Assembly: GCA_024704765.1 (NCBI GenBank)
Contig: JAKMXF010000313.1
Span: 279,450 to 343,449 of the forward strand
Length of the DNA stretch: 64,000 nucleotides
Source of the DNA: Oopsacas minuta
Taxonomy: Eukaryota; Animalia; Porifera
Direction of reading: 5' to 3'
The notes under the pieces are model-generated. The model searched no databases. It saw only the letters and a program-made list of their open reading frames with translations, and was not told the DNA's origin. Of the stretch, positions 9,434 to 61,415 are shown in pieces; the first letter of the stretch is position 1, and each line of letters starts with the position of its first letter. The translations under genes and the position numbers were made by a program.

Positions 9434-9745
9434 GCGGTGTGATTATATAGACCCTAATTTAGGGACCGGACAGGACGCTTGGGAACTGAGAAGGCCAGTC
9501 TAACTTTAATAGGACGGAGTGTTTATAACTTCACCACTTTTTCAATAAATTTCATAATTTTGATATAGATTAGAGGGTTTAGGTTAGACATATACTTGAT
9601 TGCATTATTTACATATTTTTATGATTTAGTAGATAACTAGAGAATTATTTCAGTTATGTAGATGTAACTAGAACTATGCTCTAGTAAAAATATAAGAATG
9701 ATTGCAATGTGTGAAAATATGTTACGGTGCCCCCCCCTGGACTAG

Positions 9746-38524: not shown

Positions 38525-39571
38525 TTAGTTGCTAAAATTATGAATAGAAAATTGATCTCTGTAATGCTTTGATGCCAAATGTCCAACAGTTTCCTCAAAG
38601 TCAAGAACATCATCCGGATAGGAATCATCGGAGACTTCATCCTCTAAGAGAGGTTGTTTCCACAGTATTGCTATGTTATGCAATACTGCACAAGCAACTA
38701 TGATGGAACAAACTTTATCAGGACTCATCCTGAGCTCTCCATGAAGACAGTGGAATCTTCTTTTCCATCGCCCAAATGTCTGTTCAACAATAACCCTTGT
38801 CCTCTTATGTGCATAGTTGTAGTTAAATTGGGGAGTGGATATTGGTTGGCGATAAGGAGTGAGTAAATATGGCCTCATCATGTAACCGCTATCTCCTAAT
38901 ATATGCTCCCCTATTGAAAAGGTATTTTCAACATGCATCCCAACACCTGAAATCTTCCAAATTCGTGAATCGTGAACAGACCCAGGAAAACGTGCCAATA
39001 CATCACTAAACATTCCATCTGGTTGGCAAATAGCTTGGACGTTAATTGAGTGGTAAAAATGCCGATTTATATAATCTGCTTCATTTTCTGAGGGTCTTTG
39101 GATTCGTATATGTGTCCCGTCAACTAATCCTACTACGCCTGGAAAGTGAGCAATCTCATAAAACTTGTTTTTGACTTCTACCCTCTTGAGACCAGCAGGC
39201 AAACTAACAAACTGATGGTATATAGCTTGCAAACCCAGAGAAACATCTCGGATATAACGAGAAGCAGAAGCTTGGCTTACGTTTATCCCATCTCCACAAA
39301 TTATCTGGAACGTTCCAGAAGCGAAAAATTGAAGTGCCACACAAACTTGCAAATGAGGGGAAGCAGCATAAGAACGCTCGGTGAAATTCAAATAGTTAGC
39401 TAGCAACTCTGTAATTTTAGATATTGAAACTCTAGAGAAGCGGAAACGTCGAACAAGTTCAACATCATCATAACAATCTAGGGGATCATTGAGATCCCTG
39501 AAAACTCGTTGACGTGCCATTGAGGAAGAGGTTTCTTCTTCTGCGAGAAATAGTGGAATCATCTGTGCCAT
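38525..39571 (-). CDS. Harbinger DDE transposase (HARBI1-like)
   Basis: RRFRF, LQFFASG, VDGTHI, FPGSVHDSRI, LGDSGY and RVIVEQTFGRWKRRF. 348 aa with no stops. Confidence 0.94.
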   Translation of the reverse strand: MAQMIPLFLAEEETSSSMARQRVFRDLNDPLDCYDDVELVRRFRFSRVSISKITELLANYLNFTERSYAASPHLQVCVALQFFASGTFQIICGDGINVSQASASRYIRDVSLGLQAIYHQFVSLPAGLKRVEVKNKFYEIAHFPGVVGLVDGTHIRIQRPSENEADYINRHFYHSINVQAICQPDGMFSDVLARFPGSVHDSRIWKISGVGMHVENTFSIGEHILGDSGYMMRPYLLTPYRQPISTPQFNYNYAHKRTRVIVEQTFGRWKRRFHCLHGELRMSPDKVCSIIVACAVLHNIAILWKQPLLEDEVSDDSYPDDVLDFEETVGHLASKHYRDQFSIHNFSN

Positions 39572-42500
39572 TTGTTTATATTAAAATACTTGAATATTTA
39601 TATATTATATTTGATCATAAATTGATTTAGCAAAACATTCATTAGTGTAACTTGGAATGTATAATTCAGAATGAGAGTATTTAACATTACGTACAAAGTA
39701 ATGCATTCCTTAGTAACACATATGTTATATCATAAGCGTTCGAAGCATTCCTTGCAACATTATTTGTGGAATATTTCATGAACGTAAACCACAATATTAT
39801 CATGAGATCATGCATAAAACATGAAAAGTTTTGAAAATATATTCCTGAATGATTGAAAGTAATTCTGTAAAGCAATCCATCAGAAACTCGAAAATTCATG
39901 AATATAAGTGGTACTTAAGTATATACTTAGTTAAGTACATACTTAAGTACGTACTTAACTCTTAGTGAATACGACTTAAGTACGTACTTAACTAAGTACA
40001 TGCTTAGTACTTAAGTACGTACTTAGTACTTAAGTACTAAGTATGCTTAGTGAATACGGCGGCAGGACAGAACCAAAATTCCGATTCGAGCAAACAACTT
40101 GAACGTATCGTCAGTGATGGTCACAGTGGTGGAGAGTCAGACCCTCTAGATCCAGCCAATGGTCCAATTGCTGCTAATCAATGGGAGGGGCCATATCAAC
40201 CAAACGATGTGTGCTTCCCTAGCAGACAATTGGGAGAGAGTCTGCGAAGTTTCCGATCTGAGTGGTTTGTTGGTCGCCCTTGGTTAGAATACAGTGTAAA
40301 GCTTGACTCTGCCTTTTGCTTTCCATGTCGGCTGTTTGCTGCAAGTCACCCAGGGTGTGGAGAGCCAGCATTTACGCACACAGGGTTTCGCTTCTGGAAG
40401 AATGCAACTGAGAGATTCAGAAATCATAATGGTACAATTGTGCATCATTCTGCAATGACTGCCTGGACTTTAGCCAAGACACAGAAAAACTCCATTGCTT
40501 CTCAGCTTAGTTTATCACACAAGGCACAGGTTGAGAAGAATCGTGCACACCTACGAACTATTTCTGAGACTATTCTTTTTCTTGGGAAGCAGAACATTCC
40601 ATTACGGGGTCATGATGAGGCAGAGTCATCGATTAACCGTGGCAATTTTCTCGAAATTCTGGCATTACGAGCTAAGGATAATAAAGACCTACTTGGTTCC
40701 CTTTTTTCGCACCGAATCAAATATACCAGTCCTCAGATTCAAAACGAACTGATTTCTATCATTGGGCGTTTGATTCAAGAACAAATTGTGAAAGAAGTAC
40801 ATGACAGCCAATACTTTGCAGTGATGGTAGATGAAACTATGGACATTGCCAAAATTGAACAGGCTGCCGTTTGCGTACGCTACCTTTCTATAAAAGGTAG
40901 CAACGCTATTATACAAGAACGTTTTTTGGGATTCTGGAAATGTGCCAGCACAACTGGTGAAGCATTGTATAATCTCCTGAAGTCTGTCTTATGTGAGCTA
41001 ACTCTGTGCCTTCATAATGTGCGAGCTCAGTGTTACGATGGAGCAGCAAACATGCGAGGGAAATATTCTGGACTTGCTTCAAGGGTACAAGAGGAAGAAC
41101 ATCGAGCGTTATATATACACTGTCATGCTCACCAATTAAATCTTGTTCTTTGCGAAGCTTGCATGAACATCAGAGAAGTCAGAAATGCCTTGGGTACTGT
41201 CTCCACACTATATAGTTTTATTGAGGGTTCTGCAAAGCGTCATCATCTGTTTCATGAAATACAAGAAAAGTTGGGAATTAGTCGATCAGTTACATTGAAA
41301 GCACTGTGCGAAACACGTTGGTCATGTCGTTACAGGGCTATACATGCAGTGAAGCTAACATACTCTGCCATTCTCCAATCTTTAGAAGACATTGCTGAGC
41401 ATCATGCTGCCAAGTCAGGTGCTGATGCTGCATCTCTTTTGAGACACATTTCAACCTTCGATTTCTTAATCATGATTGAGATTTTGGACTACCTATTTGC
41501 AATTACTGATTCCTTTTCTCGTGAACTGCAGTCTCAAAATCTTGACATATCTTCTTTACAAGGGAAAATACAAAGTGTAATAGACTCTCTAACTTGTATC
41601 AGAAATGGGGACTTCTTCCACCATCTTTGGAGTAGTGCAGAAAAACTTGCTGAGGACCACCAACTAGACCCACCATCAGAGCCTCGAAGGCGGAAAGTTC
41701 CCAGATGCTTTGACGATGGATCACAAAATCATGATTACTCGTCTGCTGAGGACCGTTATCGGACAGCTGTCTTCTATGCTACAATTGATATCCTCTTATC
41801 AGAACTGAAAGAACGCTTTGCAGAGAATGATTATGAAATATTGCGTAATATTAATGAAGTGCTACTGAAATGGCAGCCAAATTCACACCTCATACAGAAA
41901 TTGTCTGAGTTTTACGACTTTGATAGTCATCAACTGGAGTGTGAAATGAGAGTTTTCTATTCATACGTAAAAAATAATATTATTAAAGACACCCCGAGTG
42001 TTCTAGATCTGGCTCAGCTATTCGTGGATAAGAACCTGAATGTGATGTTTCCCCTAGTATGGAAACTGATCCTAATAGCTGCATGCATACCTGTATCCAC
42101 AGCATCTCCAGAGCGGTCATTTTCTGCATTGAGGAGACTAAAAACATACCTTCGGAGTACAATTGGGCGGGCAACAGCGATTGAGTGGATTGGCTTTAAT
42201 GAACATTGAGGCTGAGGTAGCCAGAAGTTTGGAAACAGAACTTGACTTGATTGTGGACAAGTTTGCTTCTTCAAGTCAGCGGCGCTCTGAATTTTATTGA
42301 TATTGTTTTAGTACATAATTATATAGCATAGATTCATGTATACGATTAGTTGTGTTAATTAGAGTTTCGCAATGGAATATCCCTGAGCGGCTGAGCTTCC
42401 CTGTTTTGCGCGCGGGATGGGGAAACTCCCCTTGTATGTGCCCCACCACTCACTTGGTCCTAGCTACGCCTATGCCCCCAATTTTCCATTATATTGACCT

Positions 42501-44256: not shown

Positions 44257-47025
44257 TTAAAATTCTCTTTTCTTAGCTGATGATTTAACATACATCATGA
44301 GTAGCTTCTCTTCGGAGGGAGATAATTCGGTGAGATAGGAGTCTAGCTGTGATCCTAGAGAGTTGTACAGCCCTACTAGGCAAGGAAGAGCTGCGTTCTG
44401 TATACCTAACCGCTGTTGGTATGCGGAGACGAGATCAGGAGCAAAATGAGGAACTTGTAGGGTTAGGACATGTGGTGGGGTGTGAGGGATTAGCTTACAT
44501 AGGAGTTTTAATGGAGTCAGATAGTTAATAGTAACATTAGAGAGATGACCAGTTAAGATGGTAAGCATGAGAGATATATCTAGAGACTGGGATAGAATGA
44601 TGAATAGGTCTTCTAATTTGTTACGTGTTGTGTGAGAGCTGTTACCGTGTGATATTATTAATAGTTTGGTAACTGGTTCGGTTTCTTTAACTACAATAGA
44701 AGGAAACAGCTGTGAAATTAAGTAGATAGTGTGTATACTCACTAGGGCCTTGTCTGTAAATTGTGCGGAGAAAGAGATAAGTTCTCTGACAGCTGTTGAT
44801 AGAGGTATAAATAGCAATTGAACGTTAGTAGAAATAGGAACAAAGTTGTAAGATTTAAGGTTTTCTCTTAGTTCATTCATTGAATTCGTTCTTTCTTCCA
44901 CGCCCTGAGCTGATAAGAATGAGTTGAGAAGTACTTCGAGAGATTGAGACGCTGGAGAGTGTAACTCTCCCTCTGAATATTCTAGAGATGTACAACTTAC
45001 TGTTTGAATGTCATGACAGCTGTGATTGGTGACAGGAGGTATAATGACAGGAAGAGAGGTAGATTGGAGATTAGAGGGAGAGGAATCAATAAAGGTAGAA
45101 GAACTGTTGTTATTTTCATGATAATTTGAGTATTCTTGTTCTGAAGACAAGTTTAATTCAGGATTTTCATAGAATTTTGGTACAATTTTAGCGCTTTGAA
45201 TAATTCCAAAATTAACAGAATTGTTTGGAGAAATAATTGATGAATCTCTTTCCATACTAAAGTCAAGACATACTTTAGACCGGCGCTGTACCTTGTTGGG
45301 AGTAGTAGCTAATTTTATTCGTGAGGATTCCATTACTTCAGTTTCATAGGTAACCTCTTTAGGTCTCTCAGAAGATTTATTATGCATCTGAGAGTTTGAA
45401 TAATAAACTCCTGGAGTAGAGAGAGTATTAGATGGAGAAGATTTGTATCTAGGTATCCTACTAGGAGGTAAAACTGAAGAGATCAGGTTGCTGCCACAGT
45501 AACTACTATACGGTCTGTTTGATATTGAAATGTTATTTTTTACAAATAGAGGAGAATAATATAATCTATCTTTAATATTATCGAGAGGTGAGGAATTCAG
45601 AGAGCGATGCTTTGAGGAAAAGCGCGAAATCTCCGAGTAAGATAAACGTGGGCTTTGATTAATACTGACTGGGATTCTACTGCGAGGGCGTAACGACTTG
45701 GTCAAGCCACTCAATTCCATTGTCTGAGATATAGATAAGCTATTCATAGAGCCGTCTAGGTTATTTGGAAGAATTGGATAAGAGAGAGAATCTTGTAAAT
45801 TCTGTGATATTGGTATTGACTCTGAAACAGAATCAAAATTTGATGTGTAAGTGAGTGATGGAGGGTCTGAAAGTGGAATGGGAGGAGGAGGAGGAGAGGT
45901 AGTAACAGGCGGTGGGGTACAGGATGGAGGAGGCTGTAAGAGTGGAAAACCAGAGGGTGATGTCTCAATTTCGTTTGTTTGGTTTATTGAATATAAGTTA
46001 AGAGAATGAGTGAGCTTTGAATCTGTTGGTTCCTTCGAAGAGCTAGAGAGAGAAAACGATTTAGAGAGCTGCTCGTCAGAAGAAGTCTCCTCAGAATCAG
46101 AAGGGAAGTATAATATTTCTGACAAATTAATGTTATCTCTTAAATTTTTGTCATTCTGTACACACCCCCGCAAGTCCTCGTGAGGAGGGGTATGGAAGGT
46201 GTTACGAGGCGAGAGATTCTCATTCTCTATCACCTTTGCCCAATGTCTACGGATACTGCGTGTCAGGTTTGCTTCTAACTTGGATGGCATTCTGGTAATA
46301 AACTTATTGAAGGTAGTGGGATTAAGGTCGAATAGAACATACAGCAGGTCTTGGATCTTAAGACGCATAGAGGTGTTTTTAGTGTTGAGGTCTGTAGCTA
46401 GGATAAATAAGCAATTTTGGAGGTCAATGTGGTCGAAAAAATCTTCTGGGTGCAGCAAGGGTAGGAGTTCGCTAAAATAATCAAGAGCTGCTAGTTTGGA
46501 TTTTGGCTCGAATCCATCGTCTCTGGAAATAATCCTTGCTGTAATTCTAAACAAGAATCCAGGCACGTAGCACTGCTGAAGAGAAGAAAGAGTTCCTTTT
46601 ATCAGAGATTGTAATGATGCGAGCAATTCTGATCCCAACCTTCCCAAGAGTCTACGCACAACTGTCTCTATCCACCCTTCTAAATACGCACACTTGAGTT
46701 GAATAAAATCATGTAAAACCTCAATGAATACTCTGTATAGCTTAGAATTGTGTTCATGAAAAAAACGTTTGAGTGTATTACGAATTAAAATTACGTCATT
46801 CTCAGTCAGGCTTGTGTCACCACGCCGCATGTAAATGAGTAAGTTGCAGAGGCCTGCTCGTCGCTCATTAAGGTTGGCATCACGACAATGTTCTAAACTC
46901 TTATGTAGATCTTTAGTTTTCAGTTTTTGTACAACCTCTAGAGCGATTGGAGAATACTCCCCATATAATACTGGCTGGTGACGTGGCTTGATGTTAGGGC
47001 TAGGGGGACGTAATGCTTGTGCCAT
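44257..47025 (-). CDS. CLASP: CLASP-like protein (TOG3-like domain, Ser/Pro-rich linker, C-terminal CLIP-ID); lacks TOG1/TOG2
   Basis: NERRAGLCNLL, RFFHEHNSKLYRVFIEVLHDFI and LLGRLGSELLASLQ resemble CLASP TOG3. The C-terminal CLVGLYNSLGSQLDSYLTELSPSEEKLLMMYVK resembles the CLASP tail. Confidence 0.72.
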   Translation of the reverse strand: MAQALRPPSPNIKPRHQPVLYGEYSPIALEVVQKLKTKDLHKSLEHCRDANLNERRAGLCNLLIYMRRGDTSLTENDVILIRNTLKRFFHEHNSKLYRVFIEVLHDFIQLKCAYLEGWIETVVRRLLGRLGSELLASLQSLIKGTLSSLQQCYVPGFLFRITARIISRDDGFEPKSKLAALDYFSELLPLLHPEDFFDHIDLQNCLFILATDLNTKNTSMRLKIQDLLYVLFDLNPTTFNKFITRMPSKLEANLTRSIRRHWAKVIENENLSPRNTFHTPPHEDLRGCVQNDKNLRDNINLSEILYFPSDSEETSSDEQLSKSFSLSSSSKEPTDSKLTHSLNLYSINQTNEIETSPSGFPLLQPPPSCTPPPVTTSPPPPPIPLSDPPSLTYTSNFDSVSESIPISQNLQDSLSYPILPNNLDGSMNSLSISQTMELSGLTKSLRPRSRIPVSINQSPRLSYSEISRFSSKHRSLNSSPLDNIKDRLYYSPLFVKNNISISNRPYSSYCGSNLISSVLPPSRIPRYKSSPSNTLSTPGVYYSNSQMHNKSSERPKEVTYETEVMESSRIKLATTPNKVQRRSKVCLDFSMERDSSIISPNNSVNFGIIQSAKIVPKFYENPELNLSSEQEYSNYHENNNSSSTFIDSSPSNLQSTSLPVIIPPVTNHSCHDIQTVSCTSLEYSEGELHSPASQSLEVLLNSFLSAQGVEERTNSMNELRENLKSYNFVPISTNVQLLFIPLSTAVRELISFSAQFTDKALVSIHTIYLISQLFPSIVVKETEPVTKLLIISHGNSSHTTRNKLEDLFIILSQSLDISLMLTILTGHLSNVTINYLTPLKLLCKLIPHTPPHVLTLQVPHFAPDLVSAYQQRLGIQNAALPCLVGLYNSLGSQLDSYLTELSPSEEKLLMMYVKSSAKKREF

Positions 47026-48249
47026 TGATTACTCTAAAACTCACTAAGAAAAAGAAATATACAAAATAATCAACATTCCTATTAATAAATAGAAATCAAC
47101 TCATGCGGTGTAAGGTAAATCCAGACGTTTCAGGATAGGATAGGAACAATTTCGGAATGTGCCTAAATCCCGGTGTAAGCGAGGTTTGGGGGATGCAGCG
47201 ATTTAGGGATCAATTCAGTGATATAGTGCCCCTACACGAAGTCAAGTCTCACTCTCTCAGAAGTTGGTCTGTGTCTTTCGAAGAGATATCTATCTATATA
47301 GCAGGGCATTAAAGGAGCGGTGTGAGTGCGATCCCCTAATCGCACTCACACCAGAACTGTACCATTCTGGGCATACAAGCATAAAGACGTGTTCAGAGAC
47401 GCTGGCTCAGGGTGATCTAGTAGGTTAGTAGGGGTTTATCGCTAATTCAATAAAACCCTAGTGCGTGTCAAAGGGCCTAGAATACAATCAGGGGAAGGAA
47501 TAACGCTAGAATTTTGTTCAGGAAATTAGGCATCTAAATTTCTGGAATGTATATTCTGGGAATATATAAAATCAGGAATTATGATATTCTGGGAATTGGG
47601 TATTTACAATTTCGGGAACTGTACCGCCAAAATCCTGAATTTAGGTAACTCAGATTTCCTGGAAACTTACCGTTCGATTCTGGTAATTGTTGTTTCCTAA
47701 CATTCTTTTGATTAACAATATATCGTAACAGGATCCTAGGTCACTTTCAAAATTGGTGGTTTAAAACAGAGAGTAGGGAGATTATTTCTTATTGAAAATA
47801 AAGGGTAATTAACATTAATGGTAGAAAGGTAAGCAAAGCAGTGTGTTTAATAAATAATCCCATAATATTGAGAATGTAGGAGGCAAGGAAGATTTTTGAG
47901 GAGTCATGTCTATAGCCTGCCGCCTCTAGCTACTATTTTAGGAACGTATATTCTAAGAAAATATTTATTAACTCCTAAAACCAATATATAAGCATAACTT
48001 TCAAATCTTCTTTTGTTCATTTATTACAAAAGCAATTCAAATACAATAATTGAGACAATAACAATTCTTTCAACGAATTAAAATTGTTTTGATGAGGTGT
48101 AGAGTGTAACCGTATAAACTTCAAAACAATTTCCAAATTTGCTTTTTAATAAAGGCTAATATATATATACCGCTTTTTTGTAGTCAATATAATGCAAATA
48201 TGCTACGTCCCGCGATTTCCCTCTAGATTAGTAGTCAATGTCCTGATTT

Positions 48250-49050
48250 TTGAGATTTTACTAATTGTTTCTATGATATTCATAAAAACAACAATAAAAC
48301 TACATATGAGAACCTAAAAATGCGAAATTCGGATTTAGCGTACTGTGTTACCCTGTGTAGCCGTTTAGAGCAAGCATATCCATAAAATCAACAATACATT
48401 TACATATATCATCGGACGGACAAACAAACATACAAACAAACAAGAATTGAGATTAAATCATATAGATGTTGTTTGATTTGTTCCCAATACCATATTCGGA
48501 CTCAGCACACTCAATTACCCCAGTATAGTCGTCGAAAGCATGCTTCTACCTCAATTTTGAAATTTCCAGATAATCCAGACAGTTGTTTATCCATACATTT
48601 TGCATGGTCCTATGCAATACGGATAATTGAGGTTGCGGTAATACTCGATTACTTCAGTATATAACTATGTTTCCAACACAATTTGGAGATTTGTTTACTT
48701 TATGTACCTAAAAACAACAATAAATATAACATGAGAAACTTAAAATGCGAATTCGGATTCAGTGTAGTTAGTTAAATAACATTTTGTTAATATTTGTTTA
48801 CTTTTAGGTACATAAAGTAAACAAATTTCAAAATTGTTGTGGAAACATACTTTTAATGGTTATACTGAGGTAATCGAGTATCCCGAGTCCGAATATTGTA
48901 TTGTAAACATCTATATTATTTAATCTCAATTGTTGTTATCTGTTTGTTTGTCCGTTGATATGTAAATTTATTGTTGTTTTTATGAATATGAAGTAAACAA
49001 ATTAGCAAAATCTCAAAAATTTACGTAGATACTTGCTCTAAACGGCTACA
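48250..49050. repeat. Imperfect fold-back built from the Helitron-like family
   Basis: A|TC 5' modules at 48466 (-) and 48910 (+). The 130-bp units at about 48470-48713 and 48801-48910 are inverted. Outer parts 48250-48410 and 48960-49050 are mutually inverted. Confidence 0.65.
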
Positions 49051-49130
49051 AAAGGGATTGATCTTACAAAATAATTCAATAATATATATGCCACATACGT
49101 ATATTTGTGAATTACATTGTTCTAAATATA

Positions 49131-50781: not shown

Positions 50782-51642
50782 ATGGCAAAAAATATGCTCA
50801 TAGATGTAGAAGGTACTCAAGAGTCAGTCGAAGTGAAAGAGGTGATGGAGTATTCTCTCAAGAAACACCCTGTTCTAACCGTATATAACAATAAACTATA
50901 TAGGGCTGAAGGTATAGCTATAGAGGAACACTATCAGCTGATTTTCATAGCTGATTGGGAAAGGAAATGTATCCAAGTTCTAACATTTGAGGGAAACTTC
51001 GTAACATCTTTTGGACGCAGCATACTCAGGAATCCAAATGGTATAGCGGTTACAAAAGATTACCTGTTAATTACTGACACAATGCTTTCCGCATTGTTCC
51101 AATTCAGTGATTACAATCTCATGCGGATTAAAGGACCAAAAGAGGAAAAACTGTCCGATCCGTATGGACTCTGTATCGACTATAACGGAGAAGTATATGT
51201 AGCAGATTATGGTAATAACAGAGTTTCCATTTTCTCACAAGAACTCAACTTCAAGAATTGTATCGGTACACTACAGCTAAGGCATCCTAAAGATGTAAAA
51301 GTAACTATCAACAGTATTATAGTTCTAGATAGCAGTCCAAAATGTGTTCATATCTATTCGAGAAGTGGACATCTGTTAAACTCATGTGTTTCAAATGGGC
51401 GGCATGGTATGGTAGATTATCCATCTTTCTTCTGTATTGATCTTGATGGGAATATTCTTATTAGCGATAGACACAGGCACGGTATTCAGATACTCTCTCC
51501 CTCAGGACAACACATTCATACCATAGCACGGAGAAGACGCAGAAGGGCGGAACTCGAATTACCAACTGGGATCTGTATATCAACGTTAGGTACTATATTT
51601 GTTGTGTCTAATTATAATCACTCGGTTTTACAATTATTCTAG
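50782..51642 (+). CDS. NHL-repeat beta-propeller protein
   Basis: Repeated P.GI motifs: LIFIADWERKCIQV, PNGIAV, PYGLCIDYNGEVYVADYGNNRVSIF, DLDGNILISDR and PTGICIS. No RING or B-box in the ORF. Confidence 0.85.
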   Translation: MAKNMLIDVEGTQESVEVKEVMEYSLKKHPVLTVYNNKLYRAEGIAIEEHYQLIFIADWERKCIQVLTFEGNFVTSFGRSILRNPNGIAVTKDYLLITDTMLSALFQFSDYNLMRIKGPKEEKLSDPYGLCIDYNGEVYVADYGNNRVSIFSQELNFKNCIGTLQLRHPKDVKVTINSIIVLDSSPKCVHIYSRSGHLLNSCVSNGRHGMVDYPSFFCIDLDGNILISDRHRHGIQILSPSGQHIHTIARRRRRRAELELPTGICISTLGTIFVVSNYNHSVLQLF

Positions 51643-51763: not shown

Positions 51764-54700
51764 ATGTCTAAGATTATCTTATGTGGAGCGAGTTCAGTTG
51801 GTAAGACAACTCTGTCTAACGATTGGTGTAAGAGAAATAAAGAGTACGCTCAGATTCAAGAAGTAGCTAGAGATGTTATGACTGAAAAAGGAATAACAAG
51901 AGATCACATGACCAAATCTCTGCGAACTGATAAGAAACTTTTCTTTGATCTTCAAAAATCAATTTTCGTAGAACAAAACAAGAGAGAGACTTCGCTTGGA
52001 GATACGCAATTCATTTCTGATCGTGGACCAGATCCTCTGGTCTACACATTCTTAGAAGATGAGGACGAAGCACACGCCTTGTTCGAGCATGGAGCTGTCG
52101 AGGGTTGCTTCAATCTATATCGAAAATCTTTAGTTGTTCTTTTGTGTCCATTAGATAATTCAGTTGATGATGGATTTAGATTGGTTCAGTCAACTGAAGA
52201 ACAGTATCAATTCACAGACGGGTTGCATCGAGTGTTACAAAAATATAATGTTCCATATATAACCATGAATGAGAGAGATCGGGAGAAACGTTTAGAAATA
52301 CTAAAGTTAGCTGTGCGGGGTCAGTTACCTATCTCTGCGGACCAGTTCAAGGCACAGTTAAGGCTTACATTTTACATGGACCGTGAAGCTACGAAAAATG
52401 ATAGATATTATCCTCCCTGCCTCCCTATGATTAAGCAGGGAAAGGAAGCTCGGATTCGTACGTTTGACATAAATCCGAATGATATACTTTTAACTCGTCC
52501 ACCAATGGACAACTACCAAACTAATAGAATGGTAGATCGTTATGGTGAGGATAACTTTGTACTGATTCAGTTTCACAGAAAGTTGTCAGAGAGCTACATT
52601 AGAGAGGTTCTACAAAAAGGAATCTATGTAAATGGAGATGAGTATCAATTTCTTGGGTGTAGTTCTACCGGGCTGAAAGTTAAGAAGTGTTATTTTCTAA
52701 AAGGAAACGTTAAGCATATTGAGGATGTATTGCTTGAGTGTGGTAACTTTTTGAAGATTAATATGGTCTCCAAGAGGCTGAAGAGAATCAGTTTGCTATT
52801 TTCTGTCGCAATCAACACTGGAGTTATAGTCCCTGACAATAAAGTAAAGGTCATTGATGACATTGAAAATAAGGAAGGAAATTTTACTGATGGATGTGGG
52901 TTTGTTGGATTAGCTCTTGCCGAGAAGCTCGCGAAAGCATCAAACGCGACTATTAACTCACCGGAGGATAAAGTGCCAGCTGTTTTCCAGATCAGATTCC
53001 AAGGTTTCAAAGGGATTCTTATTAAGAGCCCACACATTGATAAAGATTCTATACAAGTCAGAAAATCTATGCAAAAATTCTTTCCCGGAACAGACCCGTT
53101 TCAAGAAGTGTGGGTGTGTAAGCATTCTCGTCCTAATTCCTACGGTCACCTAAATATACAATTTATAGTGCTGTTGTCTGGACTAGGGATAGCTGATGAA
53201 GTCTTTCTGAAAAAGCAGGAAGAGTTCTTTTCTGTGGTTGAGAATATGTTAGTAAAACGAGAGTATGCAATTAAGCTTCTGAACTGGCGCGATTATCCAG
53301 ATGTAGCCATGTTTGTAGCCAGATGTACATCCAATGAGGAAATGAAGAATAATGTTTCTGTTCAGAACACATTGAAATTTATCAGGACTAAGTTGATAGA
53401 TAAAATGGATAAACTAAGCATACCAGTAATCAAATCACGGACTCTATTTGGCGTGTGTGATCCTTTAGGACTTATGCAATATGGAGAATGCTTCGTTAGA
53501 ATTTCTGTTAACGGATCTCCCCAGACTCTACAGCATGGCATGTCTGTAACTGTTGGTAAGAACCCCTGCTATCTCCTTGGGGACGTTAGAGTTCTGAAGG
53601 CAGTTGACTACCCAGAATTAAACCATTTAGTTGATTGCATAGTATTTCCTGTCAAAGGAGTGAGACCTCATTCTGTCGAGATAGCTGGATCTGACTTAGA
53701 CGGAGATGAATACTTTGTGTGCTGGGATGCAGCCCTGATCCCTCGTCGTATTGTTGCACCCTATAGCTACCCTTCGATTGACGCACCACCTTCTGACAAA
53801 GTGACAAGAGCTATGATGATAGACTACTTCTCCAGCATGACTGATATGATGGGTAAGATCAATAACTGTTTCCAGTATTGGGCTGATACTGTAGGACCTG
53901 GCTGTAAGGAATGTGAAGAACTTGGTGCCTGGTTCTCTCGCAGCGTAGATTCTTCAAAAACAGGCGATAAAGTACGTCTACCCAATTATCTTAAACCTCC
54001 CAGAAATAATCCCCCTCAGGAAGTAGCTGAGAAAGTTTGGGTTAAAATGAAGAATTTAGCGCTTAAACGCAAAAAGCTCCTGACTAAAGAGATCACTGAT
54101 GATGCCCTGAATCAAGAGATCACTGATGATGCCCTGAATCAAGAGATCACTGATGATGCCCTGAGTCAAGAGATCACTGATGATGCCCTGAGTCAAGAGA
54201 TCACTGATGATGCCCTGACTAAACAATCTTCTATCTCTGCTATTCCTGAGGATTTTATTACAAATTTGTTGCAGGATAATGATAGAGGAATTTCTGAATA
54301 CAAAGTGTTCTGTCTAATGTATAAGTGGTGCGATTCACTGCAACTAAATGATGCTGATAAGTTGGAAAAAATTCGCACGTTATCTGATTATATCAACTTT
54401 GGTAAGCTGACGATGAAAGAGAGAATTGAAGCTATTCAACTAGGCGTACCCAGAGCTAAGGTTATGAATGCTTTGAATAAGTCTAAACTCCTCAACAAGC
54501 AAATGCTAAAATCTTTCTACTTTGACCTACCTTCTTGTGGATGGAAGTTTTATCTCAGAGAGAGTAGTGCTGATTTCGATTGGAGACACCTATTCCGCGC
54601 TATTAACGGGTATCCTGAATCATTGTTAATCTTACAGCTACAGGATGGACACATCCAATATAGACTAGGATTTCATTTCATTGGACCGTTTAAAGAAGGA

Positions 54701-57700
54701 GAATCAATTATTCCTGCTGGGTCCCTAACTTCTTATTTCTTCTCTCCTCAATTCGGCTATAAGTTGAGATACGTCACAGAACGCGAATACAATCTTAATC
54801 TCACTGAGGAAGTTATTCAGTTCTATCGCGATAATGATGTTAAGAACACATTTCTCTGGTTAAGAAGTCAAATAAAAAGTGTAAAGGGTGACCAACATGT
54901 TGATTACGATAGGGTTAGCATAGACCTGAACAGATTCAAAAGGACCATTTTAAGAATTGATCGTCATCCCAAGATCAATAAAATGAACTTCCTTACAGCT
55001 GAAATATTCGTTAAGAATGTTTCTATTGAAGAGACAGCTTACTTTGATATATACGAATCTGATCAGCCAGGGGATCTCTTTACGAGTGAGTTTGAAGATT
55101 CTGAGTTACTTGAAGAATTGCCAAGTGATGATGAGGATGATAGAGATGTGTTACCGATTGTTTTTGACACACCCCTCGAAGCTCTGGAGGGATTTGCTAA
55201 GAGAGGAGATTGTCTAAAGTTTAGAGAAGTGTTTGAAAGTATAACTAATTCAGAAGATAATATTCCCAGCTCCAGATTATTAATAAAAGCATTCTTATCT
55301 TTAATCGCGAATATGGTAGTTAGATATTCTCACAAGAGCTCTATAGAGTTACTTAAAGCTTCAGAATTACATAGGAATGCAGGAGCAAAGGATGAATGGC
55401 CAAATATACAAACAACAGCACAAGCAAAAGAACCCAAACCACAAACTTGGCCAACTGTACAAACTAATGAACAGAAATTACAAACATCACCAGCATCAGA
55501 ACCAAAAGTACAAGAACTACATGCATCACCAACAATACAAACAATACCGACTGTACAAAATAATATACAAAGCACAGGACCACATGTACAACCTGGTCCA
55601 AAAATAATAACAGGACTAGATCTACCAACTCCACAACATGCAGGAACTAAAATGGTAAAAGATTATGTGAAGATATTCGTATCTATAGAGAATATGTTGA
55701 ACTCCTTACACATCACTTTTACCAGTCCGAAAGATTTGTTAGTCCTCTACTCTTATCTCAGTAGACTTCATCTCTATGATATCATTAACAAACATATAAT
55801 TACTTCGCTTGATAAAATCGAAATATCTACTCACGCTCAATACTTTGACTGTGTATTCAATTGGGAGTTGTGGTGCTTCTTGTCATTGTCTGTCTCTCAT
55901 CAGTTATCAAACAGACTATACACACTATATCTTACATTAGAAGATACTGATAGATCAGTAAATAATGAGGTTACAATTCCCAGCAGTTTACAAGAACTGT
56001 CTGTCACTTGCAATGATCCCCCGCCAGTTGATCACACACAGCTAAAGCGCTACAAGTGCTACTTTGCGCACTTAATGCTAAATCACCTGCTAGCTGAGTC
56101 TCCAGGACAGGAAGAGTATGCTAAGGTTAAAGATACAGAGAACAGTGTGTGTAAGCTTAGAGTACTTCCCGCTAAGAGAGAGGTAACTGTAAGCACAGAT
56201 CTACAGAGCAGCAGTGAGGAAGATATTGAGGATACAACTGCTGTAGTGGAACAAGTGAAAAGCAAGAAAAAGTGTAAACCCTGGAAAGCCTGTTTCTCTC
56301 GACTGAACCAAGTTACATCTAGTAAGTTCTCAAATGGTTCCTATGTTAAGATTCGTTTCTTAGCGTTGTCTACTTCTACTCATTCTAGCGAGCCCATTGC
56401 ATTAGGTCGTATCTCGCAGTACTCTTGGAGTCCTGCTAGCATTACAGTTGACATCCTAGAACCTGTCCCTGACTGTCTCAAGAGATCAGCTGATCTGAAG
56501 AAAGGGTTCTGGGCGCTCACTCTACTCGGCAATGTCACCAGCTTTAAGAGATCGAGTAAAGCACTTCAGTCCTTATATACCCCAGGAATTGTATCAATCC
56601 TCATCTCCCCAGAGGCTTTTCCTCCTAACATAATCCAGCAAGAGAATACTATAGACATTTCAATCCAACAACCTGAAGCTGTTCTTGAATCTGTAAAGAG
56701 AGATAATCCGTATACTTCATTTCCTGGCTGTAATGCCTGTGAGCATAGAGCTAGCCTCAATCAGAGTCAAGAGAATGCTATCCATGCATCTCTGAAACAA
56801 CGATTAACTCTGATACATGGACCTCCAGGCACTGGAAAGACTTTTGTTGCAGCTGAAATTGTCCATCAGATGAGTCATATGGAAGATAAATCTAAAATAT
56901 TAGTAGCTGCTGAAACAAATAACGCAGTGGACAATCTCACACGGAAACTTGTAGATCTGGGAATGCTAGTTGTACGCGTTGGGAAGAGGAATACAATATC
57001 AAAGGATCTACACGAACACTCATTAGATCACCAGGTAGAGATGAAACGAGTTGAGCTGGGCGAGAGTAAGAAGGGAGAGTTTCAATCTCCAAAGCTTAAG
57101 AAAGAAATCCTCAATGCTGCTGAAATAATAGCAACAACCTGTACAGGAGCTGGAGATAGTGATCTAAAAACAATTAAATTCTCTTATATTCTTATTGACG
57201 AAGCTACTCAAGCTATTGAACCAGTATCTCTTATATCCATAGCTAAGTCATGTGACAAGCTAATCCTTATTGGGGATCCTAAACAGCTGGCTCCGACGTT
57301 ACCAGAAAAACATGATCAACGAGAAAATATTCCTGAGGGTACGCCCCCTTATGATGCTCTGAGTGTTACTCTATTCCACAGACTCTGTACGAAGTTAGAG
57401 CCGATATTCTTGGACGAGCAACATCGTATGCACCCTGCTATCGCCGAATTTCCTTCTATGATGTTCTACGCAGGTAAATTGAGGACAGCTGTTAAGGAAA
57501 AGGACAGGATACCTCCTAATGTTCAGTTTCTTTCTCCGAACAAACCGATTATTTTTATCAATGCTGAAACTCCAGAATATCGAGCAGGCACTTCTTGGAA
57601 GAATCCCGGAGAAGCTGAATTAGTAGTAAAGATAATCAAACAGCTGATGGCTACTAGTGAGTGTACAGTATCAGATATTGGTGTCATTACTCCTTACACA

Positions 57701-58276
57701 GGTCAAGTTAGGTGCATTAGAGACGGGCTAGATAATATTAAGGTGGAAGTTAACTCTATAGACGGCTTTCAAGGCAAGGAAAAAGAAATAATCGTATTTA
57801 GCACAGTACGAAACACTAAGGGTAGTGAATTAGCGTTCATAAAGGATCATCACAGAATAAATGTTCTTCTAACCAGAGCTAAACGAGCTCTCATTGGAAT
57901 TGGGAATCAAAACACGCTAAGTAGATCTGAGATTTGGGATAAGTGGACTAGATTATACCTTAGGACTAATAGTGAATACGGCAATGGTCACATTGAGCCA
58001 CAATCCAAAGAAGATAATAAACAGAATGCACCGTTTGATGCCGCCAATACTACTAAGCCTAAGGTTGGCAAACCTCCTCAAATGCATACCTACTCTAGAA
58101 ACAAGTCTGATAACTACAACCCTACCAGAGAAAGAGATCACACAGACCACCTGTATAAGCACTCAGATCGAGTCACAACAATCAATTTGACTCCAAAAAA
58201 AAAAATTTCACAGAAAAAGAGGAAATATGGTGGAACAGGCAAACCTGAAAATATTGATTCTTCTGAGAAGGATTGA
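51764..58276 (+). CDS. NadR/AAA_28-type P-loop + RNA-dependent RNA polymerase + Upf1-like SF1 helicase fusion (2170 aa)
   Basis: N-terminal GASSVGKTT, EVAR and SDRG. RdRP motifs FTDGCG, QIRFQGFKG, KNPC and GSDLDGDEYFVCWD (DLDGD at 53693-53707). Helicase motifs GPPGTGKT (56819-56842), DEATQ, GDPKQL, QHRMHP, TPYTGQV, IDGFQGKE and NVLLTRAK. Confidence 0.93.
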   Translation: MSKIILCGASSVGKTTLSNDWCKRNKEYAQIQEVARDVMTEKGITRDHMTKSLRTDKKLFFDLQKSIFVEQNKRETSLGDTQFISDRGPDPLVYTFLEDEDEAHALFEHGAVEGCFNLYRKSLVVLLCPLDNSVDDGFRLVQSTEEQYQFTDGLHRVLQKYNVPYITMNERDREKRLEILKLAVRGQLPISADQFKAQLRLTFYMDREATKNDRYYPPCLPMIKQGKEARIRTFDINPNDILLTRPPMDNYQTNRMVDRYGEDNFVLIQFHRKLSESYIREVLQKGIYVNGDEYQFLGCSSTGLKVKKCYFLKGNVKHIEDVLLECGNFLKINMVSKRLKRISLLFSVAINTGVIVPDNKVKVIDDIENKEGNFTDGCGFVGLALAEKLAKASNATINSPEDKVPAVFQIRFQGFKGILIKSPHIDKDSIQVRKSMQKFFPGTDPFQEVWVCKHSRPNSYGHLNIQFIVLLSGLGIADEVFLKKQEEFFSVVENMLVKREYAIKLLNWRDYPDVAMFVARCTSNEEMKNNVSVQNTLKFIRTKLIDKMDKLSIPVIKSRTLFGVCDPLGLMQYGECFVRISVNGSPQTLQHGMSVTVGKNPCYLLGDVRVLKAVDYPELNHLVDCIVFPVKGVRPHSVEIAGSDLDGDEYFVCWDAALIPRRIVAPYSYPSIDAPPSDKVTRAMMIDYFSSMTDMMGKINNCFQYWADTVGPGCKECEELGAWFSRSVDSSKTGDKVRLPNYLKPPRNNPPQEVAEKVWVKMKNLALKRKKLLTKEITDDALNQEITDDALNQEITDDALSQEITDDALSQEITDDALTKQSSISAIPEDFITNLLQDNDRGISEYKVFCLMYKWCDSLQLNDADKLEKIRTLSDYINFGKLTMKERIEAIQLGVPRAKVMNALNKSKLLNKQMLKSFYFDLPSCGWKFYLRESSADFDWRHLFRAINGYPESLLILQLQDGHIQYRLGFHFIGPFKEGESIIPAGSLTSYFFSPQFGYKLRYVTEREYNLNLTEEVIQFYRDNDVKNTFLWLRSQIKSVKGDQHVDYDRVSIDLNRFKRTILRIDRHPKINKMNFLTAEIFVKNVSIEETAYFDIYESDQPGDLFTSEFEDSELLEELPSDDEDDRDVLPIVFDTPLEALEGFAKRGDCLKFREVFESITNSEDNIPSSRLLIKAFLSLIANMVVRYSHKSSIELLKASELHRNAGAKDEWPNIQTTAQAKEPKPQTWPTVQTNEQKLQTSPASEPKVQELHASPTIQTIPTVQNNIQSTGPHVQPGPKIITGLDLPTPQHAGTKMVKDYVKIFVSIENMLNSLHITFTSPKDLLVLYSYLSRLHLYDIINKHIITSLDKIEISTHAQYFDCVFNWELWCFLSLSVSHQLSNRLYTLYLTLEDTDRSVNNEVTIPSSLQELSVTCNDPPPVDHTQLKRYKCYFAHLMLNHLLAESPGQEEYAKVKDTENSVCKLRVLPAKREVTVSTDLQSSSEEDIEDTTAVVEQVKSKKKCKPWKACFSRLNQVTSSKFSNGSYVKIRFLALSTSTHSSEPIALGRISQYSWSPASITVDILEPVPDCLKRSADLKKGFWALTLLGNVTSFKRSSKALQSLYTPGIVSILISPEAFPPNIIQQENTIDISIQQPEAVLESVKRDNPYTSFPGCNACEHRASLNQSQENAIHASLKQRLTLIHGPPGTGKTFVAAEIVHQMSHMEDKSKILVAAETNNAVDNLTRKLVDLGMLVVRVGKRNTISKDLHEHSLDHQVEMKRVELGESKKGEFQSPKLKKEILNAAEIIATTCTGAGDSDLKTIKFSYILIDEATQAIEPVSLISIAKSCDKLILIGDPKQLAPTLPEKHDQRENIPEGTPPYDALSVTLFHRLCTKLEPIFLDEQHRMHPAIAEFPSMMFYAGKLRTAVKEKDRIPPNVQFLSPNKPIIFINAETPEYRAGTSWKNPGEAELVVKIIKQLMATSECTVSDIGVITPYTGQVRCIRDGLDNIKVEVNSIDGFQGKEKEIIVFSTVRNTKGSELAFIKDHHRINVLLTRAKRALIGIGNQNTLSRSEIWDKWTRLYLRTNSEYGNGHIEPQSKEDNKQNAPFDAANTTKPKVGKPPQMHTYSRNKSDNYNPTRERDHTDHLYKHSDRVTTINLTPKKKISQKKRKYGGTGKPENIDSSEKD
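54080..54223 (+). repeat. In-frame 27-bp minisatellite, about 5.3 copies ([Q/K]EITDDAL[N/S/T])
   Basis: Unit AAGAGATCACTGATGATGCCCTGAATC, nearly identical copies, directly after the RdRP domain. Confidence 0.95.
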
Positions 58277-60229: not shown

Positions 60230-61415
60230 TAATAAATGCTTAAAGTGAAAATAAAATGTCAGAAAGGATGTGGAGAGGTTTACAAAATGTGACACAATAG
60301 ATCCCAGAAATAGTGTCCTTTCCGAAATCAAAGGTGCGAGTAATGTAGAAAAGTAAAAGCTAACAGAACAAACGAACACGCTAGAATTTGTCTAGACAAT
60401 CCAGATGGTGGTGTTACATGTCCTTATGAGGAAGTGAGTTGTGAGACAATTGAAACAGCAAGAAAGGACGTGGACACAAATATAACTCAGAATATGATTA
60501 GTCACCAGAAATTATTGCTACATGAATTAAATCAGCTGAGAATTGGTAGCGAACAGCTGAGTTACAAAATGGATAAGAAGGGATTTGAAACAACAAACAA
60601 ACCAACCAATTTGTATAGAAATGATACAAATAATAACAAGACTATATCGATTTGTTAGCACTAGTTATCATGGTATAGCTATTCTAATCCCTCTCCTACT
60701 TATGGAGAGAGATAGGAGAACGAACTGTCTATGCAGTCACATGAACAGTCTATACAGTCACATGAACTATCTGTACAGTCACATGAACAGTCTATACAGT
60801 CACATAAACAGTCTATACAGTCACATGAACTATCTATACACTCACATGAACAGTCTATACAGTCACATAAACAGTCTATACAGTCACATGAACTATCTAT
60901 ACACTCACATAAACAGTCTATACAATCAACCAAACAGTCTATACAATCTACCAAACCTTATACACTTCTATCTACAATACAATTGGAATGGAAGATTAAA
61001 GGTGTTAAACAAAATATAGAGAACAAAGGGAATACTCTCAGTGATCCATTCTATGTAGGTTTATACAAGTGTCAGGGCTATATTGAATGGAATTGTTTGA
61101 ATGCAGATAAAGTAGGTGTTTTCATTTGTATTATGAAAGGAGCTTATGATGATAAACTACACTGGCTTATCAGATACAAATATACATTAATTCTACTCAA
61201 TCACATTAACATTAATAATAATTATGAAACACTACTCAAGTAACTAAGGAAGATTTGGAGATTTATTCTAATAGCTTCAGGAGACCTACTCAGCTGAGAA
61301 ATGATGAAGGTTTTGGATCTTCTTCATTAATTTCAAACACTGTAATATTAGAAGCTAATATTGTAAAGACAGCATAACTCTTCTAATTAAAATAGAATTA
61401 TTACCAGCATTATAA
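60230..61415 (+). pseudogene. TRAF-family pseudogene (zinc-finger remnant, coiled coil, MATH domain)
   Basis: IKCQKGCG and CPYEEVSCE remnants; MATH peptides LEWKIKGV..SDPFYVGLYKCQ..VFICIMKGAYDDKLHW continuing after a frameshift as SFRRPTQLRNDEGFG...ITLLIKIELLPAL*. Several stops and frameshifts. Confidence 0.8.
60722..60952 (+). repeat. 21-bp (heptad-coding) tandem repeat, 11 copies
   Basis: Unit GAACAGTCTATACAGTCACAT. Units 4-6 and 7-9 form a 63-bp higher-order duplication. Confidence 0.95.

Follow-up and report, generated by a model that had tools for sequence, protein, structure and literature searches.

Upf1-like helicases are 5′→3′ RNA translocases, and in Neurospora and Arabidopsis one of them is the partner of an RdRP (SAD-3 of SAD-1 and SDE3 of RDR6, respectively). 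A different organization is found in Dictyostelium RrpA-C and in oomycete and cnidarian RdRPs, where RdRP and helicase reside in one polypeptide; the helicase of these proteins belongs to SF2 (DExD/H, Dicer-related) and is N-terminal. To our knowledge, no function has been established for animal cellular RdRPs outside nematodes. The S. pombe helicase Hrr1, which works with an RdRP and Cid12, is the orthologue of ZNFX-1, and ZNFX-1 co-precipitates with the RdRP EGO-1 (PMC9276528).

A gene located in the DNA stretch analyzed here (64,000 nucleotides, hereafter referred to as the window) codes for a protein that, like the RDRC-type pairs (Rdp1 with Hrr1 and Cid12; EGO-1 with ZNFX-1), brings together a cellular RdRP and a Upf1-like SF1 helicase. 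Unlike in these pairs, both are contained in a single chain, which has no nucleotidyltransferase partner and to which kinase-like and TLDc-like modules are added. The protein thus looks like a fused (“Rosetta stone”) form of the RdRP/Upf1-like helicase pair. RdRP and helicase also share one polypeptide in the Dictyostelium, oomycete and cnidarian type; since the helicase of the window protein is SF1B and C-terminal rather than SF2 and N-terminal, its fusion is an independent one. A Dicer-helicase-type fusion can be rejected, as the N-terminus is occupied by AAA_28 and not by an SF2 DExD/H helicase, and DEAD/ResIII matches in Pfam were found only at the C-terminal SF1 P-loop, where they were below the cut-off or marginal.

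The gene and its modules

The gene is a single intronless ORF with an ATG start and no internal stop, coding for 2170 aa plus stop (Table 1). Its start codon fits the family, whose other members start 2–3 residues ahead of a conserved IILCGASSVGKTT. The preliminary description of this DNA had reported the uninterrupted frame and a set of motifs (P-loop, EVAR, SDRG, DLDGD and the SF1B helicase set), and all of these are present in the translation; the three domains it had proposed were recovered by Pfam as AAA_28, RdRP PF05183 and AAA_11/AAA_12, each far above its curated cut-off. The same description had left aa ~830–1600 unassigned; this region holds the TLDc-like domain and the helicase’s own 1B barrel and stalk.

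Table 1. Coordinates of the gene and its features in the window.
Feature	Position	Strand	Evidence
Whole gene, intronless ORF	51764..58276	+	Frame, family-wide conservation, dN/dS 0.12 vs. P0001 gene
AAA_28 P-loop kinase-like domain, aa 1-200 (EVAR at aa 33-36)	51764..52363	+	Pfam, PDB, AlphaFold, Foldseek, dN/dS 0.07
Walker A GASSVGKTT, aa 8-16	51785-51811	+	In AAA_28 domain
SDRGPDP, aa 85-91	52016-52036	+	In AAA_28 domain
Lid DDGFR	52166-52180	+	In AAA_28 domain
Cellular RdRP PF05183, aa 240-752	52481..54019	+	Pfam, PDB, motif conservation, dN/dS 0.08
Catalytic DLDGD, aa 644-648	53693-53707	+	In RdRP domain
27-nt tandem repeat, 5.2 copies, encoding the (EITDDALNQ)x5 linker after RdRP	54079..54218	+	
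Helical region aa 826-900, then TLDc-like beta-sandwich aa ~903-1085	54239..55018	+	
Acidic linker aa 1088-1135, predicted disordered, 19 D/E, 1 K/R	55025..55168	+	
Alpha-helical domain aa ~1122-1452, interrupted by low-complexity insert	55127..56119	+	
Lineage-specific P/Q/T-rich low-complexity insert, aa ~1207-1292	55382-55639	+	pLDDT ~30
1B beta-barrel and stalk helices of Upf1-like helicase module, aa ~1461-1615	56144..56608	+	
SF1B (Upf1-like) helicase core, aa 1661-2060, motifs I-VI intact (GPPGTGKT 1686-1693, DEATQ 1812-1816, GDPKQLAPT 1837-1845, QHRMHP 1886-1891, TPYTGQ 1976-1981, LLTRAK 2035-2040)	56744..57943	+	Pfam, PDB, PADLOC, dN/dS 0.07
Basic C-terminal tail, poorly conserved, aa 2061-2170	57944..58273	+	dN/dS 0.39
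KKKISQKKRK stretch in tail	58196-58225	+	

The AAA_28 match (aa 3–176) has an E value of 3.5e-16 (60.3 bits vs. a cut-off of 27). A PDB sequence search matched this region to the C-terminal domain of NadR, and the NadR RNK domain provided the top Foldseek matches (TM 0.6) to the AlphaFold model of the N-terminal domain (pLDDT 82.5). The alignment pairs the lid motif DDGxR with WVDDGLR in NadR from H. influenzae, and the P-loop, the DR motif and the lid arginine are retained. While the fold and the P-loop are common to the window protein and the ribosylnicotinamide kinase domain of NadR, identity is 15–20%, and the NMN adenylyltransferase and HTH domains are absent from the window protein. NadR orthology was rejected: NCBIfam NadR models scored 34.7 vs. 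341 bits and 32.9 vs. 201 bits, and aligned to the kinase part alone. In the L007 and L008 loci, AAA_28 is encoded by a separate ORF of ~150–200 aa located just upstream on the same strand; the module stays linked even when it is not part of the same chain.

The RdRP match (E 3.9e-112, 376.3 bits vs. a gathering cut-off of 23.8) spans profile positions 5–555 of 582, i.e., the whole catalytic domain. Among solved structures, plant RDR2-type enzymes (4e-50) and QDE-1 (2e-11) were matched. All catalytic motifs are conserved across 61 homologues, and the purifying selection on DLDGD on which the preliminary description had made function depend is evident from the retention of SDLDGD in 58 of them and from the dN/dS of the domain.

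The helicase was recognized over aa ~1665–2049 by AAA_12 (E 5.5e-54) and AAA_11 (E 1.6e-47), both above threshold, and motifs I, Ia, II, III, IV, V and VI are all present. Upf1 is the best solved-structure match of the core, over ~400 aa (Upf1/Nam7, 8e-67; Sen1, 5e-42; SMUBP2, 2e-40; ZNFX1, 8e-38), and PADLOC matched the helicase to MkoA (4.9e-85). The stretch in front of the core is helical plus barrel, and has the 1B β-barrel and stalk of Upf1-like SF1B helicases. Of the “Upf1/ZNFX1-type” label given earlier, the Upf1-like half stands; the ZNFX1 half does not, since the ZNFX1 match is the weaker one and Pfam found no NFX1 zinc fingers in the window protein, which also sets it apart from ZNFX-1-type partners, including Hrr1. 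Nor is it Upf1 proper, the NMD factor: the helicase core and the 1B barrel are shared with Upf1 (RENT1/Nam7), but the window helicase is fused to an RdRP, Pfam detected neither the Upf2-binding CH zinc-knuckle domain nor an SQ tail, and there was no match to UPF1_Zn_bind or another zinc domain at E ≤ 0.01. Since helicases of the window type are not Upf1 orthologues, the name “Regulator of nonsense transcripts 1” carried by sponge homologues is misleading.

The domain at aa ~903–1085 has a predicted TLDc fold. Its assignment rests on the modeled fold and not on sequence: the region had no PDB profile match, and, in contrast to TLDc proteins (OXR1/OXR2, NCOA7, TBC1D24 and mEAK7), Pfam TLD did not match it even at E ≤ 10 in six family members. 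Known TLDc proteins bind V-ATPase, and we know of none that belongs to an RNA enzyme; here the domain is probably a protein-docking module. For the α-helical domain that follows, a structural search gave no informative match. The KKKISQKKRK stretch of the tail could be a nuclear localization signal, which it resembles.

Relatives and descent of the architecture

The preliminary description could not judge how widely this architecture occurs. It is in fact conserved in sponges (~60 proteins in public databases) and is also present in a mussel, an acoel, a diatom and a diplonemid, while RdRP-helicase fusions without AAA_28 were found in amphioxus, limpet, fungi, a green alga and a dinoflagellate. 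The gene is therefore not unique, but belongs to a large, almost unstudied family spread across eukaryotes. Relatives include Oopsacas minuta KAI6659112.1 (named “Regulator of nonsense transcripts 1”), Ephydatia muelleri EMCRGX_G018482, Dreissena polymorpha XP_052265511.1 and Branchiostoma belcheri XP_019625576.1. Identity is 58% with Oopsacas, 40% with Ephydatia and ~38% with Dreissena over the N-terminal 800 aa; these fusions are colinear with the window protein, have all motifs and fall into the same RdRP clade and the same helicase clade. The (EITDDALNQ)x5 linker, the P/Q/T-rich insert and the basic tail are specific to the window protein’s lineage. B. lanceolatum BL02069 of Pinzon et al. 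2019 is a related RdRP-helicase fusion, and the AAA_12 drawn on an amphioxus RdRP in a figure legend of that paper is the sole mention in the literature that we found (PMC6396948). None of the relatives is characterized, and their database names are automatic.

In the RdRP tree, a 100* branch with a length of 0.68 parts canonical RdRPs (plant RDR1/2/6, nematode EGO-1/RRF) from the clade with the window protein, so the latter is not a canonical alpha-type RdRP. The helicase is present in none of the 24 canonical RdRPs, and all 49 helicase fusions are in the other clade.

The same subclade appears again in the helicase tree (95*), with the same inner groups. The two trees agree, so the RdRP and helicase domains have evolved together and the fusion is old. 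Sponge sequences cluster by sponge class, and in glass sponges the family has grown to several paralogues, with two in Oopsacas.

Compared with a 71%-identical copy, dN/dS is 0.05–0.08 for each folded module, 0.16–0.19 in the helices of the α-helical domain and 0.75 in the low-complexity insert. In a ~95%-identical sister organism every indel is a multiple of three, and 26 of the 40 listed substitutions are synonymous. A contig of a related organism (organism B) skips 108 nt, corresponding to 4 units of the 27-nt repeat, and 129 nt inside the P/Q/T-rich insert, both in frame. These data bear on the possibility that the gene is an artefact or dead, i.e., a frame that is open by chance, separate genes wrongly joined in the assembly or a retrocopy that was inactivated recently. 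The exact protein is indeed absent from the public gene-call collection. However, an open frame of 6.5 kb in which four domains score well, a whole-gene dN/dS of 0.12, in-frame indels only, contigs 100% identical to the ORF in independent runs of the sample and the recurrence of the colinear architecture across many assemblies, in over 60 proteins, make this extremely improbable, and conservation already contradicts it. Contigs of four runs of unspecified type continue across the intergenic gap into the upstream ORF with even, DNA-like depth, and among the runs listed none carries an RNA label. One can also imagine a horizontally moving cassette, or one that is selfish or virus-derived, instead of an anciently inherited host gene, which would account for both the lack of introns and the patchy spread among taxa. 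Introns are missing from the coding sequence not only in the window but also in L003, Oopsacas (6186 nt, 2061 aa) and Dreissena (5826 nt, 1941 aa), members of the AAA_28-bearing subclade come from sponges and also from a bivalve, an acoel, a diatom and a diplonemid, and stramenopile and fungal sequences lie within one metazoan RdRP group (Pinzon et al., PMC6396948). We nevertheless regard a cassette as decidedly unlikely: no terminal inverted or direct repeats bracketing the ORF were found, homology with the paralogue locus ends at the ORF ends with none in the flanks, neighbors differ between loci and are ordinary host genes (in the window, animal genes of ordinary kinds as well as transposons), no RdRP relative turned up among 2.9 million IMG/VR viral contigs, purifying selection is strong, the amphioxus member carries introns, and the grouping of sponge sequences by class is that of vertical descent.

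Proposed function and competing readings

The explanation that we favor, and consider fairly probable as a whole, is that the ORF is a genuine, intronless gene belonging to the glass sponge itself and kept by selection, that its product is an RNA enzyme with four modules (NadR-type kinase-like domain, DLDGD RdRP, helical plus TLDc-like region, and Upf1-like SF1B helicase with its 1B barrel), that the RdRP clade to which this enzyme belongs is old, pan-eukaryotic and separate from the canonical plant/nematode/tick type and from that of EGO-1 and plant RDRs, and that the enzyme most likely represents a cis version of the partnership between an RdRP and an Hrr1/ZNFX-1-type helicase. The RdRP would supply a pathway of RNA silencing or RNA surveillance with complementary copies of target RNAs, and the built-in helicase would play in cis the part that Hrr1, SAD-3, SDE3 and ZNFX-1 have in trans for other RdRPs. 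Since the helicase should translocate 5′→3′ on single-stranded RNA, two modes can be proposed. It may travel along the template, strip it of proteins and structure and bring the polymerase to the 3′ end; or it may trail the polymerase on the nascent strand and separate product from template, which would free single-stranded products and allow the template to be reused. The kinase-like domain is expected to bind ATP and to phosphorylate a nucleoside, a nucleotide or an RNA 5′-OH end. We know of no precedent for the kinase-like and TLDc-like modules in RNA silencing, and their roles are therefore guesses.

An enzyme that is active outside small-RNA silencing is possible but doubtful. It could serve, for example, in RNA surveillance or decay, or be an antiviral sensor-effector that makes RNA as a signal or a decoy and not to guide Argonaute; its kinase-like domain would then modify nucleotides or RNA ends. 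TLDc proteins such as short NCOA7 have a link to antiviral states, the nearest counterparts of the helicase are Upf1, which acts in mRNA surveillance, and MkoA of the bacterial Mokosh defense system, and the paralogues of glass sponges are consistent with such a role. Amphioxus, whose RdRP genes include an AAA_12-bearing relative, showed no RdRP-dependent small RNAs, and a role unrelated to RNAi was proposed there (PMC6396948), which counts against silencing. On the other hand, as far as we know, all cellular RdRPs of known function act in RNA silencing, the helper Upf1-like helicase recurs in silencing pathways (PMC9276528), and no data point to one specific alternative. A more far-reaching scenario, which we consider unlikely, would make the clade a self-sufficient RNA-surveillance machine without Dicer or Argonaute input, encoded by an intronless cassette that moved by horizontal transfer between marine eukaryotes (sponges, bivalves, acoels, diatoms and diplonemids). 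In such a machine, the helicase would take up a foreign or aberrant RNA and thread it as far as the 3′ end, phosphorylation of an RNA 5′-OH end or a nucleoside by the kinase-like domain would license or prime synthesis, and the TLDc-like domain would dock the enzyme on a membrane or organelle complex.

A whole RdRP clade, from sponges to amphioxus and including fungi and algae, bears its helper helicase in the same chain, which provides independent genomic support for the RdRP/Upf1-like-helicase partnership of yeast, worms, plants and Neurospora; being a single polypeptide, the protein offers a system to dissect how template handling and RNA synthesis are coupled. The NadR-like kinase and TLDc-like modules are conserved under equally strong selection and, not being known to have a tie to RNA silencing, point to missing steps. 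Automatic names (“Regulator of nonsense transcripts 1”, “nicotinamide riboside kinase” and “DNA polymerase III delta prime subunit”) hide these homologues from surveys of RNAi machinery.

Domain organisation of the 2170-codon ORF

The preliminary description had reported a single-ORF fusion of a P-loop domain, a cellular RdRP and a helicase, and this observation is confirmed. The frame is initiated by an ATG and contains no stop over 2170 codons, each of the motifs quoted was found in its place in the protein, and Pfam assigned all of the families that had been expected. The start codon is credible, since homologues start two or three residues ahead of the conserved IILCGASSVGKTT. Judged from the sequence, the polymerase centre, the SF1B helicase with its accessory barrel and the P-loop kinase-like domain are all intact.

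Among solved structures, plant RDR2-type enzymes match the RdRP domain far better (4e-50) than QDE-1 does (2e-11). The helicase core is nearest to Upf1/Nam7 (8e-67), followed by Sen1 (5e-42), SMUBP2 (2e-40) and ZNFX1 (8e-38). Pfam detected neither the CH domain of Upf1 nor an NFX1 zinc finger in the window protein. It follows that “Upf1-like” is the right label for the helicase, while both “ZNFX1-type”, which had been proposed initially, and the database label “Regulator of nonsense transcripts 1” are wrong.

The predicted fold of the N-terminal domain (pLDDT 82.5, modelled with 47 homologues) is most like that of the NadR ribosylnicotinamide-kinase domain (Foldseek E 1e-5 to 4e-6, TM 0.6), the next structural matches being shikimate, thymidylate and deoxynucleoside kinases. 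The lid DDGFR lines up with WVDDGLR of Haemophilus NadR. Orthology to NadR was rejected: with cut-offs of 201-341 bits, NCBIfam models reached just 33-35, and the kinase part alone could be aligned. The middle region, of which some 800 residues had been left unassigned, gave no sequence-level match by Pfam (E <= 10), NCBIfam or PDB profile search and was recognised through fold comparison only.

Features of the window protein (aa) and of the surrounding window (nt, strand in brackets)
Feature	Position	Remarks
Harbinger-type DDE_Tnp_4 transposase ORF	38525-39571 (-)	4e-43; apparently intact; adjoins hAT-type ORF
hAT-type ORF	40050-42209 (+)	DUF4371 and hAT dimerisation domain; apparently intact
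922-aa ORF	44257-47025 (-)	no Pfam match; within the stretch of strongest GC skew in the window (0.31); ends helical, HEAT/TOG-looking; centre long, Ser/Pro-rich
Inverted-repeat nest	48246-49055	arms 21-87 nt, 79-95% complementary; fold-back, MITE-like structure; ~2.7 kb upstream of RdRP gene
286-aa ORF of NHL repeats	50782-51642 (+)	Pfam NHL 6e-24; same strand as RdRP gene, different frame
RdRP gene	51764-58276 (+)	one ORF
AAA_28	aa 3-176	Pfam 3.5e-16
Cellular RdRP (PF05183)	aa 240-752	Pfam 3.9e-112
(EITDDALNQ)x5		directly after RdRP domain; encoded by 27-nt tandem repeat
Acidic linker	aa 1088-1135	between TLDc-like domain and helicase 1B barrel/stalk
Helical domain		no informative match; between TLDc-like domain and helicase 1B barrel/stalk
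P/Q/T-rich insert	aa ~1207-1292	disordered, lineage-specific; between TLDc-like domain and 1B barrel/stalk
AAA_11 and AAA_12	aa ~1665-2049	Pfam 1.6e-47 and 5.5e-54
21-nt tandem array	60680-60973	~10 copies (7-aa repeats); at start of 170-aa ORF
170-aa ORF	60731-61243 (+)	MATH/TRAF domain (3e-10) in C-terminal part

Distribution and phylogeny of the family

A word-indexed search returned 66 proteins, each 1500-2400 aa long and sharing the domain set of the window protein; where a source is named, it is the glass sponge Oopsacas minuta or one of the demosponges Ephydatia muelleri and Geodia barretti. With the first 830 residues as the query, 1.84 billion representatives were then searched exhaustively by HMMER; six query segments were mapped locally onto the matches, and names were looked up afterwards. 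The kinase-RdRP-helicase order is complete in the mussel Dreissena polymorpha, the acoel Symsagittifera roscoffensis, the diatom Amphora coffeiformis and the diplonemid Rhynchopus euleeides (a Trinity transcript). RdRP-helicase proteins without AAA_28 were found in the animals Branchiostoma belcheri and Patella caerulea, in ascomycetes/basidiomycetes (Cladophialophora, Phellinidium), in the green alga Edaphochlamys and in the dinoflagellate Effrenium. By segment mapping, the post-RdRP segment (helical and TLDc-like) was detected in the sponge, Dreissena, Rhynchopus, Branchiostoma and Edaphochlamys proteins and not in those of Symsagittifera, Amphora, Patella, Cladophialophora, Phellinidium and Effrenium. 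According to Calcino 2018, Amphimedon lacks an RdRP, so that not every sponge has a member of the RdRP-helicase family.

An RdRP-domain tree of 92 sequences was built by IQ-TREE quick search, with SH-aLRT as the only support. A branch supported at 100 separates the canonical RdRPs (plant RDR1, nematodes, tick, spider, oyster; helicase in 0 of 24) from a clade of 68 with all 49 helicase fusions, in which the “helicase-less” rows include fragments and gene calls made at ORF level and carry no implication of helicase loss. In this tree, which is without named beta/gamma references, the window RdRP is placed outside the canonical alpha-type group. Every AAA_28-bearing member belongs to a subclade of 34 (99), and the window protein and Oopsacas fall within a group of seven (100). 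The helicase-domain tree of the same proteins returned the AAA_28 subclade (95) with identical inner groups. The agreement of the two trees indicates that polymerase and helicase have long been evolving as one gene; the fusion is neither recent nor an assembly artefact.

Amphora and Symsagittifera are paired in the helicase tree (97); in the RdRP tree they are joined at 95 in a small group with further unnamed sequences. The diplonemid transcript is placed among animal sequences. These placements could reflect horizontal transfer, contaminated source data or an ancient paralogy. A large set of proteins of ~960-1000 aa (P0279-P0300), some clusters of which comprise 444-844 member sequences, combines an RdRP domain with the post-RdRP (TLDc-like) segment, no helicase being detected, and forms a tight group beside the amphioxus and limpet fusions.

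In a sponge subgroup without AAA_28 in the ORF (loci L007 and L008), an AAA_28 ORF of 148-208 aa precedes the family ORF on the same strand at a distance of 0.8-2.7 kb. This upstream ORF could represent a first exon or else a neighbour gene, and under either reading the association of AAA_28 with the RdRP-helicase persists. At another locus (L002, GCA_029782515.1), a free-standing 203-aa AAA_28 ORF at 1844-2455 (-) is arranged head-to-head with a 2390-aa family member at 2980-10152 (+). At all of these loci the kinase-like module adjoins the RdRP-helicase even in a separate ORF.

The window gene is a member of an existing, uncharacterised family, whose database entries come from many species under automatic, often misleading names. 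The sole trace of the architecture in the searchable literature was a figure legend that marks AAA_12 on the amphioxus RdRP BL02069 (PMC6396948), one possibly relevant 2014 review being outside the scope; text matches to “AAA_12” in two mite papers proved to be DOI strings and not domain reports. With the architecture present in many species, its novelty is less than had been hoped at first. As far as we have checked, four points have not been described before: the family constitutes an RdRP clade of its own, its two enzymatic domains co-evolve, a NadR-like kinase domain is present in part of the clade, and the RdRP domain is followed by a TLDc-like fold. The family deserves experimental attention.

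Selection, origin and possible role

In an alignment of 61 full-length homologues, the P-loop and the motifs SDRGPDP, SDLDGD, GPPGTGKT, DEATQ and TRAK are conserved, SDLDGD being present in 58. Comparison with P0001, the closest homologue (71% identity; gene at locus L003), gave an overall dN/dS of 0.12 (Nei-Gojobori), with values of 0.07 for AAA_28, 0.08 for RdRP, 0.05 for the helical and TLDc-like part and 0.07 for the helicase core against 0.75 for the low-complexity insert and 0.39 for the tail; dS is ~1.5, near saturation, so that the ratios are rough, the contrast between modules and linkers still being clear. Given the conservation of SDLDGD and the low RdRP ratio, the lack of purifying selection on DLDGD that the preliminary description had named as an argument against function was not observed. 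Relative to contigs of a ~95%-identical organism, 26 of the 40 substitutions listed are synonymous, and the indels (108, 129, 9 and 3 nt) are in frame in every case. Our comparisons indicate that the modules have been co-inherited under purifying selection.

A mobile or viral origin of the family would be in line with the taxonomically mixed AAA_28 subclade, where a diatom stands beside an acoel. Such an origin is, however, unsupported, because no terminal repeats flank the window ORF, homology to the paralogue locus L003 does not extend into the flanks, the similarity stopping at the ORF borders, and a search of IMG/VR yielded no relatives of the RdRP domain, only unrelated helicase matches.

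The interpretation given in the preliminary description is supported in part, namely in its domain calls, the single frame and the purifying selection on DLDGD. An RdRP acts together with a Upf1-like helicase in Neurospora (SAD-1/SAD-3) and Arabidopsis (RDR6/SDE3). The same partnership is represented by Rdp1-Hrr1-Cid12 of S. pombe and by EGO-1 with ZNFX-1 of C. elegans (PMC9276528). By analogy, the window protein is probably a cis version of this partnership, and a silencing-type role appears reasonably probable. Upf1-like helicases move 5′ to 3′ on RNA, whereas an RdRP reads its template 3′ to 5′; a simple succession of the two activities along the template is not possible. The helicase might clear the template and bring the polymerase to its 3′ end or, in another arrangement, might work behind the polymerase on the nascent strand, peeling the product off the template. 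A function outside RNAi, which we consider rather unlikely, is given weight because Pinzon et al. (PMC6396948) found no small RNAs of RdRP type in amphioxus, an animal with an AAA_12-bearing relative among its RdRP genes.

Gene structure, expression and neighbourhood

Introns are absent from the coding region of the window gene and of L003, and likewise from that of the Oopsacas gene, where 6186 nt encode 2061 aa, and of the Dreissena gene, where 5826 nt encode 1941 aa. A gene span of 8784 nt for 1785 aa shows that the amphioxus member contains introns. A search for sequencing runs gave four of one sample and one of a related organism, with the kind of library unspecified. These runs are probably DNA, since depth stays even where window-identical contigs cross the intergenic gap, and a contig of 107 kb occurs in one run. 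A search restricted to “RNA” libraries retrieved no run, and exact look-up in the gene-call collection gave no record of the exact window protein. Hints of a single mRNA come from relatives only, namely the “complete” Trinity ORF of Rhynchopus, the NCBI XP_ models of Dreissena and Logan contigs of 6-7 kb.

The window is host chromosome, a contaminant being excluded. Ordinary animal genes (ADAM-type metalloprotease, WD40, JmjC, DAGAT, NHL, MATH) surround the ORF, hAT and Harbinger transposases are present, and G+C is ~36%. Just 121 nt, with an AATAAA-like signal inside, separate the end of the NHL-repeat ORF from the ATG of the RdRP gene; the NHL ORF could be a gene in its own right or the final exon of a TRIM-NHL-type gene.
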